From the NCBI RefSeq assembly GCF_000315625.1, contig NW_005434614.1, positions 126,573 to 190,572 on the forward strand: a DNA stretch of 64,000 nt. Reading direction: 5' to 3'. The notes under the pieces were generated by a model. It had not been told where the DNA came from. It saw nothing but the letters and a program-made list of their open reading frames with translations, and did no database searches. The stretch is from Guillardia theta CCMP2712. Its lineage: Eukaryota > Protista > Cryptophyta. This document shows positions 18,889-24,689 of this stretch, piece after piece. The translations under genes and the position numbers were made by a program. Each line of letters begins with the position of its first letter. The stretch's first letter is position 1.

Positions 18889-21800
18889 ATGAACAGGTTG
18901 CAACTTGACGACCGGTCGCACGCGAAGAGCGGCTACCAGTCCGCTCGACCCAACCATGTACAGACGGATCTTGTCCCCAGCCCCTCGCATCGGTCTGCTC
19001 CCCGTCGACTCTCGTCGGATAAGATCTTCCAGGAAATCCTCAAGCCGCAAGACAACGACAGCCCTAAGGGCGAGAATGCTGCCAAGACTGAGAACAAGCG
19101 GTTCTGGCCACAGAGCATCTACACCTTCGATGTGACGAAGTTCCTTCGATTCCTGCGGAAGGTGAAGAGAAGAATAGAAGTGGATGTCGACAAGGCACAG
19201 CTGTCTGTGTACGACCCTGAGACCGACGTGTTGAAAAAGAGAATTGTGATCTCTGAGATCTGGGGAATGACTTCAGGAGACAAGAACAGCCCGAACAAGC
19301 TGATCATCCGACTTAGCAACGAGCATAGCGACATAGAGTGCGAGTTCATCTCCACTGAGCAGAAGATGCTCTTCATTACTTTGATCCGTGACCTGAACCT
19401 TCCGTCGAAGAGAAAGTCGTCAGACGCCAAGGAGACAAGCACCCTCGGTATCTGGCCTGACGCCTCGACGCGGCAGAGCTTCTTGAGCCTCGGGCTGCTT
19501 CGAAAGGTTGACCCGCAGGTCATCCAGCAGATCGAATCGCTCTTGAAGCCGCGGGTCTTTGCTAAGGGACATACGATCGCGAGGCATGGAGCTGCCTGTA
19601 CGCACCTTTACTTCCTCATGAGCGGGAGCGTCTCGTGCTATGGCCCCGACGGTCGTAGAATGGCCGACAAGGGTAGGGGAGAGTTCCTCGGGTCCGCGGA
19701 GCTCATGGCGAATGCCGCTGCTCGGTTTCAAGAGATGCAGGGCAAGGTGAGAGCGTGACAGTGTAGGAGAGGGAGCGAGCAAGGAGTTGCAGGCGAGGAG
19801 ATGAGCAGCATGACGATCGCGTTGCACGAGGCAGGAGGGAGAAAGAGAGGAAGGGGGGTGAGGGAGGGAGGGAAGAAGCTCACGGGAGGATGGCAGGTGA
19901 TGCTCTCAACAGCGTTCAGCTCGACCGTTGTTTGCAACTCAGACTGTGAGGCGATGGAGCTGCGACTGGAAGCCCTGCTGCCCGTCCTGTGTTCTTGCGA
20001 CCCCCTCTACGAGAACTTGTACGCGATCGCCACTGCTAGAGCATCGGTAGCTGCGCCTTATTTCATCCCCGAGTTGCTCTCTTTGGCTTGACTGGCGAGC
20101 AGGTCCGAGGGATCAAATTCTCCCAATTGAAGGAGGCAGCGGAGGATCTGGAGCAGGAGACGCTCACTTTCGACCAGCTCACGCAGAAGCAGAAGATGAG
20201 GTTGCGAGCTGCAGGTCTGTTGCCAAACACTTGTGCTCCTTCCTCGCGAGCTCTTCCCCTCTAAGAACTCCTCCTCCTCTTCCCTCTTTTGTCCTTCTCC
20301 TCCAATACCTCCGGTGTTGTCCTCAATCAGTATGTGACAGCCTTGTAGGCATGACGGAAGAAGACGTCATGGAGAACCCAGAGCTCGTCCTGCAGATCCT
20401 GAGAACCAACGAAGGTCTGGACACTGAGGCCCTCAGGTACCTGTGCAACTGCAAGGTAGGAGCTGACGCGTTTGCAGGACCTTCCAGCTCTTCAGGATGG
20501 TGGACAAGCCAACCTTGACAAGAATCGCCAACCAGCTGAGGCCCAGGTGGGGAGGAGGAAGAGGAGGGAGGAGGGAGGGAGGAGGAGGAGGAGGAGGGAT
20601 GAGGAGTTGGGTGGGGTGGGGAGAGGTGGAGATGGCCCTGAAGGTATCGTGCAGGCGGTTCAATGCTGGAGAGTACGTGCTGAGAGCGGGAGACCCTGGA
20701 GACTCTATGTTCTTCATCAACTCGGGCAGAGTTGCTGCCGTGGTCAACGGTCACGAACTGGAACCAATGAGGATGGGTCAATTTTTCGGGGAGATCGCAC
20801 TTGTCTCCCACTGTGCGCAATATATGGGACAGTCAGGGTAAGTGAAGAGAAGGGAAGTAGAGGAGGAGGGAGGAGGAAAGGGGAGGGGGGAAGGGAAGAA
20901 GGGAGGAGGGACGTTGGGAAAAGACCCTCAGGGAGGGGAGAAGAAGTAAGATGAGGTGGAAAAGAGTTGAACTGACTTTTAATTCTTTGCAGTTTTGTGA
21001 TCGCAAAGCGAACAGCAGATGTTGTCTGCAAGGAGAGCTGCGATCTCCTCGAGCTCCATAAGGATGTCGTCATCGCCATCCTCGACTCCGCGCCCAAGCT
21101 CAAGTCCACCTTCTTCCAGGTCTTCGCGCAGCCGCGGGAGGCAGCCGGCTGACGTCCCACACAGGCGCTGAAGGAGATGGCTGAAAAACGCTTGTCTCGA
21201 GACGAGCAATCAGGTGGACTTGTCCAGTGGCCGCCCCCTCTCTGACTCTCCTTCCTCAGGCGACGTCAGGAAGTCCACCAGGATGATCAACTACTCGTTC
21301 AATACAAACTCCACCTCATGCCAGAGCTCGCCTGCTCAGACGCCGCTCTCTAACGCCATGTTCAGTCCTCTTGGAGGAAGGAGGGTGCCTCCTATGTCGG
21401 ACTCTGACATTGGTTCCCCGCGCACGCAAGCCATGTTCTCTCCTCGTGCTCTGGACTCGCCCAATTCGCCCGCTCGGTCGGGAGATCTCCGATATGCAGA
21501 ATTCAACTCGCAGAAGAAGGCGCCGCCTCCCATCAACGGAGCAGACGGTCCCTTGCGCTTCCAACCTCTTGCTCTCCCTCAACCCTTTGCAGGAAACTTG
21601 ACGCTGCAGAAGCTGCCGACGCAGAAGCAGTTCACTGCTGTGGCCTCTTCCAAGTGAATTGCAACAATGGGGAAGACGAGGACTGACGTCTCGTGCTCTA
21701 GGGCGAAGATCAAGAACGGCGTCGACCCCCGTAAGCATTGGGACACCCTGCAAAAGCTGGCCAAGGGGTCGAGCGGAGCTGTTTATCTGGGACAGCCAAA

Positions 21801-23469
21801 GGAGAAGGCGCTGAGAGATGTAAGGGTTCTTCGCCATCTTCTTTCACCCTCCTCCTCCTTCTCCCTCCCCTTCCCCTTCCACTCTCCTCTCCCTCTCCTC
21901 TCCCTCTCTCTCTTCCTTCTCCTTCTCATCGTTTGCTCAGCGATGGCCGCGAGTGGCGATCAAGAAGTTCGCCATGAACGAGGAGACGGAGCTGGAGGAG
22001 CTCGAGAACGAGATTCAGATCATGAGCGTCAGCAGCCACCCCAACCTCGTCGAGTACATCGATGCCTACAACTGGTCTGGACGTCTGGGAGGAACCAAAG
22101 TCTGGGTCGTCATGGAGGCGATGCAGTATGGGGCCATGAACGAGATCCTGGAGAAGTGAGTCGAGGAGGACGATGGGCAGGAGTTGGAGGGGAGGCTGAC
22201 GTCAACGGCAGGGGATGGAAGTCTTGGTACGGCGGGGAGGGGAAGAGCGCACAGCACGAGTCTCTCATCGCGTACATGATGAGGGAGACGTTCCAAGGGC
22301 TGGCATACCTCCACTCCTTCAGCCGCATCCATCGCGACATCAAGAGCGACAACATCCTCGTCGGGGCCGGCGGGACTGTCAAGATCGCAGACTTTGGGTT
22401 CTGCGTGCAGCTCACCAAAGAGAACCAGTCGCGCTCCTCCGTGCTCGGGACTCCTTACTGGGTGAGGAGGCGAGGAAGGGGGAAAGCAGTAGAAGGGTGG
22501 GGGAGAGAGGAGGAAAGGAGGGAGAAGACAGAGAGGGGAATGGAATGTGACGAAATGGAGAGAGCAGGGAGAGGGAGAGAGGAGAGGAGGAGGTGGACAG
22601 AGAGGAGGGACAGGGACGAGGACTGTTGACGCTGATGCTCGCAGATGGCGCCTGAGGTCATCCGAGAGAAGCCTTACACCACCAAGGTGCTCAACGATCA
22701 TCCAGACGTTCATCCTTTCCCTCCTACTCTTCCTGTAAGTTGTTCATCCCCGTGTGACGAAGCGGCAGGTGGACGTCTGGTCGACGGGCGTCGTTTTGCG
22801 AGAATGCGCACAGAAGAATCCGTGAGAACGATGGGAGGGAAGGGGGGAGTGAGGAAGTGGAAGAAGCGGAGGGAGGGGAGAGAGAGAAAGAGAAGAGGAG
22901 AGAGGAGGGGGAGAGAGGTAATGATGTGCATGTCAGACCATACTTCACGGAGACGGTCTTCCGCGCCATGTACCTCATCTCGACCAAGGTGCTCCTCCTC
23001 TTACTGCCGCGTCCCTTCGCTACCCCCGTTCGCTCATTCTCTTCTCCTCTCACTGACTGTGCTAAGGGCATTCCGGGGCTCGACAACCCTGGGCGTTGGA
23101 GCAAGGATCTGATAAGGTGATAAAATACAATGGAGGCGATGGAGCTGACGAGAGTGTATTCAGCTTCGACAAGGCTTGTCTGCAAGTACAAACTTCGCTT
23201 CTCCTCCCTTGTCTTGTGTAACTTCTCTCCAGGTGGACGTCAAACATCGCATGTCCAGCGCCGAAGCGCTCGATCATCCGTAAAATTCCCTACCTCATCT
23301 CCATTCACCTCTTCCTCATCACATCCTCATCTCAGGTTCCTTTCCAAGGCGTGCGATGCTGCATTCTTCGAGCAGGTCAACCGTGAGAGCGAGTCAAGTC
23401 AAGCTGATGGCTTGGCAGATGATCATCAAGTGCTCCAAGGGGGAGAAGAACAAGAAGACAACGCTGTGA
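18889..23469 (+). CDS. PAK/STE20-family Ser/Thr kinase with PH-like domain and two cyclic-nucleotide-binding domains (true start may be further upstream)
   Basis: cNMP1: FAKGHTIARHGAACTHLYFLMSGSV..GEFLGSAEL. cNMP2: FNAGEYVLRAGDPGDSMFFINSGRV..GQFFGEIAL..KRTADV. Kinase: KGSSGAVY, VAIKK, IHRDIKSDNIL, KIADFGFC, GTPYWMAPE, VDVWSTG. Intron 21654-21701 joins linker to kinase in frame. Stop TGA 23467-23469. Confidence 0.85.
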
Positions 23470-23497
23470 ACGAGAGGGAAATGGCAGTTAAAGACCC

Positions 23498-23984
23498 TTA
23501 AACCTCCCCCTCCTCGTCCTCCTCCATATCCTCTGGCTTCTCAGCAGTGCTCTGCTCGACGAGAAACTGCCGCAACGTCTTGTTCTCAGCAGGACAGAGG
23601 TCAGCTGCTGTCTGTCCGGCTTGGTTCTTCCTTTTGGCATCAGCTCCATGGCTGCATCGCACACGCGTCACTGGTAGCAAGCGACAACAACAGCCCGCAC
23701 CTGACAAGCATCTTGCACGCAGGCTCCCGCGAGTTCAGTGCAGCGAGATGCAGGGCAGTGTTCCCTAACTTCGTCTGAGCGTTCTTATCGCAATCCTTCT
23801 GAGCGAGGATGTACTGCATGACCTCCACGTGACCATTGGCCGCGCACATGTGGAGAGGAGTGTGTCCTTGCGAGCTCTGGGCGTTGATATCAACGGGGTC
23901 GAGCCACTTGATCTGTTCTATGCATCTCTTGAGGCGCTTGGCATCTCCATCTCTAGCTGCTGTATGCAGAGGAGTCCAGCCCAT
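23498..23984 (-). CDS. Small ankyrin-repeat protein
   Basis: GWTPLHTAA, GHTPLHMCAANGH, GNTALHLAA, GQTAADL; one intron about 23650-23700; acidic tail ending EGEV*. Confidence 0.9.
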
Positions 23985-24689
23985 GACTTGAAGACTCGAG
24001 GGTTCACAGTGCGGGTTCAGACACGATGTTGCATTCTTGTAGCACAGATGCCTCTGCCAGACAACCAATCAGACGATCAGCGGGAAAATGCAAGGGTATG
24101 GTGAGAGAATAGTGACTAGCAAGGACTGCAGCATCCATACAACAAGAGGTTGTATGGGGCGCAGAACAAAACTGAGAGGATAGCCAAACAGGTTTGAGAA
24201 TGAAAAAGTCGCCATGGAGAGAACATGAGGAGAAGGATGGCATCAGAAGCTGCATTGTCTGACTTAGCAGGTGCAGGAGAAGGAGATTCATAAGATGGAA
24301 GAAAATGCGAGGGAAAAATTCTTGGGAGGGGGAGGACGAGGATGAGAGCAAGAACGAGAGGAAGGGAGAACAGGAGGGGTGGAGAAGAGCAGGAGAGAAG
24401 GATTAGGATCAGGATCAGGATCAAGATATGGTCAGATGGAGGGGAGGGAGGGAGGACAGCAGGGAAGCTCAGGAGAGAGGTCAGGAGAGAGGGAGGTCAG
24501 AACAAGGACTAGAACCAGGCCACACCCAGAAGGACAAGGAGAGGTAGAAGACGAGAAAGAGGAGGAAGAGGATGATGTATCAGAGTATATGAAGAGGAAG
24601 GAATGAGTGTTGTGCTCGTTGTTGCTGCTCCTCTTCAGTTCAGAGCATGCGCTCTTCCCGCCATGCAAGAAATCAAAAACAAGGAACAG

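Follow-up and report, generated by a model that had tools for sequence, protein, structure and literature searches.

In textbooks, PAKs act as effectors for GTPases of the Rho family, and the classic kinases controlled by cyclic nucleotides (PKA and PKG) all belong, to our knowledge, to the AGC group; in PKG, tandem cyclic-nucleotide-binding (CNB) domains lie N-terminal to the kinase on one chain. CNB domains are also found on other kinases: Dictyostelium GbpC carries one on a TKL/Roco kinase, and Phytophthora has both CAMK- and AGC-linked cyclic nucleotide monophosphate (cNMP) domains (PMC3019232). Here we analyse a gene of the cryptophyte alga Guillardia theta CCMP2712, located in a stretch of 64,000 nt (contig NW_005434614.1, positions 126,573 to 190,572; "the window", in which all positions below are counted unless another contig is named). 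Its predicted product has, from the N-terminus, a low-complexity tail, a PH-fold domain, a first CNB domain (CNB1), a segment resembling the PAK inhibitory switch, a second CNB domain (CNB2), a Ser/Pro-rich linker and a PAK-type kinase. We propose, with a probability of roughly 0.6, that this 999-aa protein is a PAK-family kinase that has lost its CRIB, retains a remnant of the inhibitory switch between two CNB domains, and is released by cAMP or cGMP. The non-AGC kinases with CNB domains mentioned above, which are mostly uncharacterised, belong to different kinase groups, and none has a PAK-type inhibitory stretch. No paper on a PAK with CNB domains was found in the library of literature that we searched, to which this absence applies.

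The gene occupies 18889-23501 of the + strand, from the start Met at 18889 to the stop codon at 23499-23501, and comprises 20 exons. The 19 introns between them are all GT-AG, range from 41 to 183 nt (41-56 nt in many cases) and agree in phase throughout, giving a coding sequence of 3000 nt (999 aa plus the stop). The model was built by hand from the sequence and then corrected against orthologues. Exons 1-5 lie at 18889-19746, 19897-20046, 20103-20214, 20349-20436 and 20478-20546, exons 6-10 at 20655-20837, 20993-21119, 21165-21213, 21260-21547 and 21593-21653, exons 11-15 at 21702-21819, 21941-22155, 22212-22461, 22645-22686 and 22769-22821, and exons 16-20 at 22937-22988, 23067-23116, 23164-23185, 23233-23279 and 23336-23501. 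A first-pass annotation, made from the letters of the window alone, had read the locus as one spliced + strand frame with a PH-like domain, two cNMP domains and a PAK-type kinase at 18889-23469; the single frame, the parts and the start are all confirmed here, but the end falls short of the stop codon. Searches were made exon by exon, and contiguous proxies were provided by a protein of Hanusia phi (Cryptophyceae, Geminigeraceae; P0182) and by the frames of L017, L004 and L002. Exons 1-19 map in order, and abutting, onto the transcriptome-derived Hanusia protein (941 aa), successive exons matching its residues 1-283, 284-333, 334-370 and 372-399 and continuing in this way to 926-940, so that 940 of the 941 residues are covered; over the exons, 910 of 1010 aligned residues are identical (90%). 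P0182 ends within exon 19; for exon 20, the match is to the C-terminal end of the orthologue from L004. The alignment bears out the start Met and all of the junctions, including the 41-nt intron 4, the acceptor at 22211 and the intron at 21654-21701 named at first reading, which is real and 48 nt long. An extra in-frame GT-AG intron of 45 nt (21548-21592) was also recognised, the 15 residues of which are missing in Hanusia. The gene is single copy in G. theta, as judged from a search of the whole assembly (87.1 Mb in 669 contigs).

The metagenome contig L017 encodes CNB1 through to the stop of the kinase in a single uninterrupted frame of 807 aa, and in L004 and L009 the CNB2 and kinase regions are only about 70-106 nt apart, with one short GT-AG intron between them. 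Judged from these alignments, the cNMP and kinase parts belong to a single coding unit. That two adjacent genes, one for a cNMP-binding protein and one for a PAK kinase, have been wrongly joined is a reading that we reject as highly improbable, given the single frame of L017, the extent of P0182 over both parts and the absence of any in-frame stop or gap from exon 7 to exon 11.

The Ser/Thr kinase domain is encoded by exons 11-20 (21702-23345, + strand) and is recognised by Pfam as Pkinase, with 32.8 bits for exon 11 and 65.2 bits for exon 12. Its catalytic motifs are intact (VAIK, HRDIKSDN, DFG within DFGFC, and GTPYWMAPE), the last three having been noted at first reading. When both G. theta kinase exons were compared with the PDB by phmmer, PAK1-3 came out best (79.7 bits for exon 12, with PAK1/3; 30.5 bits for the other exon), and the contiguous kinase of an orthologue matched PAK1 with 201 bits, MST3 with 173 and PAK4 with 164; the best 20 matches listed for it are PAK1-3 and the best 60 are all of the STE20 group, with AGC kinases absent among those 60. 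The best 120 relatives listed from among 5.8 billion proteins are PAK-like, most with a PBD, and those outside the family are at most 46% identical. In a quick maximum-likelihood tree the family forms a clade (SH-aLRT 99) that is sister to the canonical PBD-PAKs of cryptophytes (98), in agreement with the STE20/PAK assignment made at first reading, albeit through a placement that joins long branches. By these comparisons, the kinase is PAK-type and of the STE20 group. A contrary identity is suggested by the public name of the Hanusia protein in UniRef (A0A7S0EQR9), "cGMP-dependent protein kinase", and by the CNB-CNB-kinase order, which is that of PKG; with only STE20-group kinases among the best 60 PDB matches and PAK-like proteins, most with a PBD, as the best 120 relatives, we reject an AGC-type PKG identity, which is most improbable. 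The protein further departs from PKA and PKG in its degenerate first CNB domain, in the insert within its second cassette and in the disordered linker of about 115-130 aa ahead of the kinase. The name of P0182, like that given to another orthologue by JGI (P0181, "CRP-like cAMP-binding protein"), is unfitting for a PAK-type catalytic domain.

Within the PAKs, the catalytic domain is most similar to that of group I (human PAK1-3), whose autoinhibitory part after the CRIB also aligns with a stretch of the protein; at the activation-loop phosphosite, the position of PAK1 Thr423, a Ser is found. Unlike group I PAKs, it has no CRIB and no visible kinase-inhibitory (KI) stretch, its switch-like segment is placed between two CNB domains, and a family-specific insert of about 12 aa (GWKSWYGGEGKSAQ) precedes the helix that carries HESLIAY. 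The nearest kinase relatives in the tree, the cryptophyte PBD-PAKs (P0063 and, from Cryptomonas curvata, P0115), have a switch sequence (for example, GISKEDALEHPQTVLDVLEF) that resembles GMTEEDVMENPELVLQILR of the CNB-kinase, but differ from it in having a full CRIB (ISAPFNFQHK.HV) and no CNB domains. The best named relatives, amoebozoan PAKs of the PakC type (PH-PBD-kinase; 43-44% identity), share a PAK-type kinase and an N-terminal PH fold, and many amoebozoan kinase relatives carry a PH domain beside the PBD; in the PakC type, however, a CRIB/PBD is present, CNB domains are absent and Pfam detects the PH domain, which in the present protein is apparent from its fold only.

Between CNB1 and CNB2 lies a segment of about 37 residues, LTQKQKMRLRAAG and MTEEDVMENPELVLQILR, parted by intron 3 (20215-20348); the switch-like segment (TFDQLTQKQKMRLRAAG / MTEEDVMENPELVLQILRTN) as a whole occupies 20166-20410 of the + strand, and its VLQIL is taken by us to hold the equivalent of PAK1 Leu107. 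The CRIB and switch regions of 64 PBD-PAK matches were used to build a profile hidden Markov model (PAK-AID). It gives 14.0 bits on exon 4 of G. theta and 11.3 bits on the contiguous stretch of Hanusia, in both cases over profile positions 34-60, while six-frame pieces of the window (102,327 aa) reach at best 6.3 bits, reversed sequences about 0, and 53 other CNB proteins (50,247 aa) at best -0.0 bits. Aligned by hhalign, the family profile matches PAK-AID with a probability of 93.9% (E 1.5e-7) over 37 columns (TFDQLTQKQKMRLRAAGMTEEDVMENPELVLQILRTN), on PAK-AID columns 24-60, as compared with 0.4% for the reversed alignment and at most 4.6% for 30 column shuffles. Columns 1-23, which represent the CRIB, are left unaligned. 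Moreover, Pfam PBD (PF00786) matches none of the single G. theta exons and has no match at E values up to 10 on L004, L017 or P0182, and the G. theta sequence has no ISxPxxFxHxxH motif. The CRIB is therefore scored here as absent, the aligned columns being the part that comes after it, just as the first-pass annotation had suggested when it saw the likeness to the PAK autoinhibitory region together with the lack of a CRIB core. From the profile scores, the hhalign match with its controls and the unaligned CRIB columns, we take the stretch to be what probably remains of a PAK inhibitory switch. As the protein lacks a CRIB, neither docking to nor activation by Rac/Cdc42 is predicted.

The likeness could also have arisen by chance or convergence, the helix being simply an N-terminal helix of CNB2 and any regulation by cyclic nucleotides being purely of the PKA/PKG kind. 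The match is short (26-37 residues), Pfam PBD is silent on the segment, the scores of distant orthologues are low (3.5-4.6 bits) and VIA-align places model residues 40-50 in the helices that precede the CNB domains of channels and PKG. This we nevertheless consider improbable, as hhalign gives 93.9% where no control out of 31 exceeds 4.6%, none of the 53 other CNB proteins scores above 0 bits with the PAK-AID profile, and the closest relatives of the kinase all carry the inhibitory segment. Canonical CRIB/PBD sequences are themselves present at four places in G. theta, on C3 (L005), C53 (L006 and L008) and C163 (L007), with switch sequences that resemble the switch-like segment. At one of these (L007; C163:99159-100628) the CRIB is followed, 1.3 kb downstream, by an exon for a PAK-like kinase that shares 64% identity with the kinase of an orthologue.

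Pfam was run on single exons and on L004, L017 and P0182, with a cut-off of 27.5 bits for cNMP_binding. CNB1 (19474-20046, + strand, spanning intron 1) matches PF00027 with 33.7 bits on exon 1, over profile positions 2-60 only; the barrel is present in G. theta and the domain contains a long insert, but the phosphate-binding cassette is degenerate, lacking both the Glu of FGE and the Arg. The family keeps a motif of its own there, GEFL..AE[FL][LM]A..A.RF, in P0003, P0006, P0012, L017 and P0182. Since this motif is conserved while the Glu and Arg of the cassette are gone, CNB1 appears to be constrained but is probably not a classical binder. CNB2 (20411-21213, + strand, spanning introns 4-7) is a complete domain, with 44.6 bits on exon 6 (its tail being in exon 7) and 84.9 bits on P0182; the presence of two cNMP domains, the first without its Arg, is thus as first described. 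An AlphaFold2 (AF2) model of an orthologue from the switch-like segment through CNB2 (P0060:1-205) has a predicted local distance difference test score (pLDDT) of 83.3, and VIA-align matches its CNB2 to SthK (Z 20.6), HCN2 (20.5), CNB-B of PKG II (19.4) and also MlotiK1, with Z in the range 19-21; it superposes on ligand-bound CNB domains at Z of about 20 with a root-mean-square deviation of 1.4 A. On the model, CNB2 is a true CNB fold.

The cassette of CNB2 (20785-21017, + strand) reads FFGEIAL, a 17-aa spacer and RTADVV. A canonical CNB cassette has 6 residues between FGEIAL and RTA, and ordinary CNB sequences are 11-13 columns shorter than CNB2 at this insert (alignment A2). Thus, the earlier description of the cassette as canonical is half right, because FGE and RTA are kept and the spacing is not, the insert being of lineage-dependent length. 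The Thr that follows the Arg had been taken as a residue favouring cGMP. It is indeed present; HCN channels also have RTA yet prefer cAMP, and for this reason the Thr is a weak pointer to cGMP and nothing stronger. In the G. theta genome, at least 78 matches to cyclase domains and many CNB domains were found, and the number of cyclase matches makes a cyclic-nucleotide messenger plausible. CNB-domain matches directly beside kinase matches were also noted elsewhere in the genome, at C28:646424-651501, C32:665911-666897 and C44:131766-132704.

Possibly, the CNB domains are no longer sensors of cyclic nucleotides at all and serve as scaffolds, as dimerisation modules or as binders of other ligands, the kinase being controlled by phosphorylation of the linker or by trans-autophosphorylation. 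The loss of the cassette Glu and Arg from CNB1, the variable insert inside the cassette of CNB2 and a linker rich in SP/TP sites all fit such a view. Set against them are the retention of FGE and RTA of CNB2 in every lineage seen, the close superposition of the CNB2 model on ligand-bound domains and the large cyclase repertoire of the genome, and we regard the loss of sensing as unlikely, though it deserves to be kept in mind.

The missing CRIB and the two CNB domains around the switch remnant suggest that cAMP or cGMP may switch the kinase on, and an input of this kind, in place of Rac/Cdc42, may coherently account for the composition of the protein. In the pathway that we envisage, an ancestral cryptophyte CRIB-PAK would have lost its CRIB, and CNB domains would have been added on either side of the switch helices that were left. 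At rest, the switch-like helices together with CNB2 would hold the kinase inactive, much as the PAK1 switch or the regulatory modules of PKA and PKG do. Binding of cAMP or cGMP to CNB2 would then move the N-terminal helices of this domain, which come directly after the switch-like helix, and free the kinase, with autophosphorylation of the activation-loop Ser following upon release. CNB1, with its degenerate cassette, would more likely serve in structure or docking than in sensing a ligand, and the PH-fold domain may bring the protein to a membrane. More tentatively, and with something short of an even chance, the protein could be a second-messenger-gated PAK in the strict sense, its switch helix mechanically coupled to CNB2 and cAMP or cGMP doing the job of Rac/Cdc42.

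Several observations weigh against release of a PAK switch by cyclic nucleotides. At the place where exon 4 and Hanusia match the PAK-AID profile, distant orthologues reach only the 3.5-4.6 bits cited above, and the KI stretch of PAKs has no visible counterpart. AF2 packs the switch-like helix among the N-terminal helices of CNB2, with moderate confidence (pLDDT 62-77). Ligand binding could be weakened or changed by the insert between the Leu and the Arg of the CNB2 cassette, which measures 17 residues in both G. theta and Hanusia, 18 in L004 and 8 in L017, and reaches about 50 in P0183. The sister position to the cryptophyte PBD-PAKs also joins long branches. A predicted complex of the regulatory module with the kinase (score 0.16, mark 0.34) counts neither way.

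As for the remaining parts of the protein, the N-terminal extension (18889-19113, + strand; about 75 aa, of low complexity) is common to G. theta and Hanusia, whereas the distant orthologues P0001 and L002 begin at the PH-like domain. It includes SAPRRLSS (18985-19020), kept as RRLSA in Hanusia; this R-R-x-S motif, missing in the distant orthologues, could be a phosphosite or a pseudosubstrate. The domain that follows (19117-19398, + strand) has no Pfam PH match, either in the G. theta exons or in L004. Its AF2 model (mean pLDDT 80.1, pTM 0.71) has seven strands and a C-terminal helix (strands within residues 12-88, helix 91-105), and in the PDB Foldseek relates it to the PH-like domains of Akt1, ARAP2, CERT and talin F3 (E 3e-5, probability 1.00); the best 50 fold matches are all PH-like, mostly PH domains, talin F3 included. 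The modelled fold is that of a PH domain, which upholds the PH-like domain proposed at first reading. The Ser/Pro-rich linker between CNB2 and the kinase (21260-21653, + strand; about 115 aa) is of low complexity, is interrupted by the 45-nt intron and matches no Pfam family.

The longer introns (19747-19896, 20547-20654, 20838-20992 and 22462-22644) are purine-rich, with low complexity of the GGAGGGAGG type, the others being of 41-56 nt; a purine-rich stretch at 22872-22917 likewise lies inside intron 15 (22822-22936), outside the coding sequence. The single linker/kinase intron of the orthologues is unusual at L009:1030-1135 and L004:1139-1245: that of L009 sits between the copies of a 20-nt direct repeat (GACTTTCCCGATGATCTAGG), and its counterpart in L004 is a GT/GC-rich microsatellite. 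At 23488-24100, on the - strand, a convergent neighbour has open frames with ankyrin-repeat-like sequence (GWTPLHTAARDGD..., GHTPLHMCAANGH...); the kinase gene and this neighbour meet or overlap at their 3' ends.

The architecture is not confined to G. theta: it is found in Hanusia and in at least three further, cryptophyte-like lineages from the environment (including P0183), which are 51-73% identical among themselves and 58-73% identical to G. theta over the kinase exons. In the G. theta protein, part of the self-inhibitory switch of a PAK appears to have been kept with CNB domains in the place of the CRIB, in a genome that also has ordinary CRIB-PAKs. If release by cyclic nucleotides is correct, the protein would be the first kinase of the STE20 group to respond directly to a cyclic nucleotide as activator, the name "cGMP-dependent protein kinase" of the Hanusia entry would need correcting, and the PAK autoinhibition module would prove to be drivable by a different input. 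Those who study kinase mechanisms or build tools from them would also gain a compact, naturally occurring layout for STE20 signalling under cNMP control. For the alga itself, it would provide a direct route from its many cyclases to PAK-type outputs, and would strengthen the case that, in cryptophytes, cyclic nucleotides are linked to several kinase groups outside AGC.

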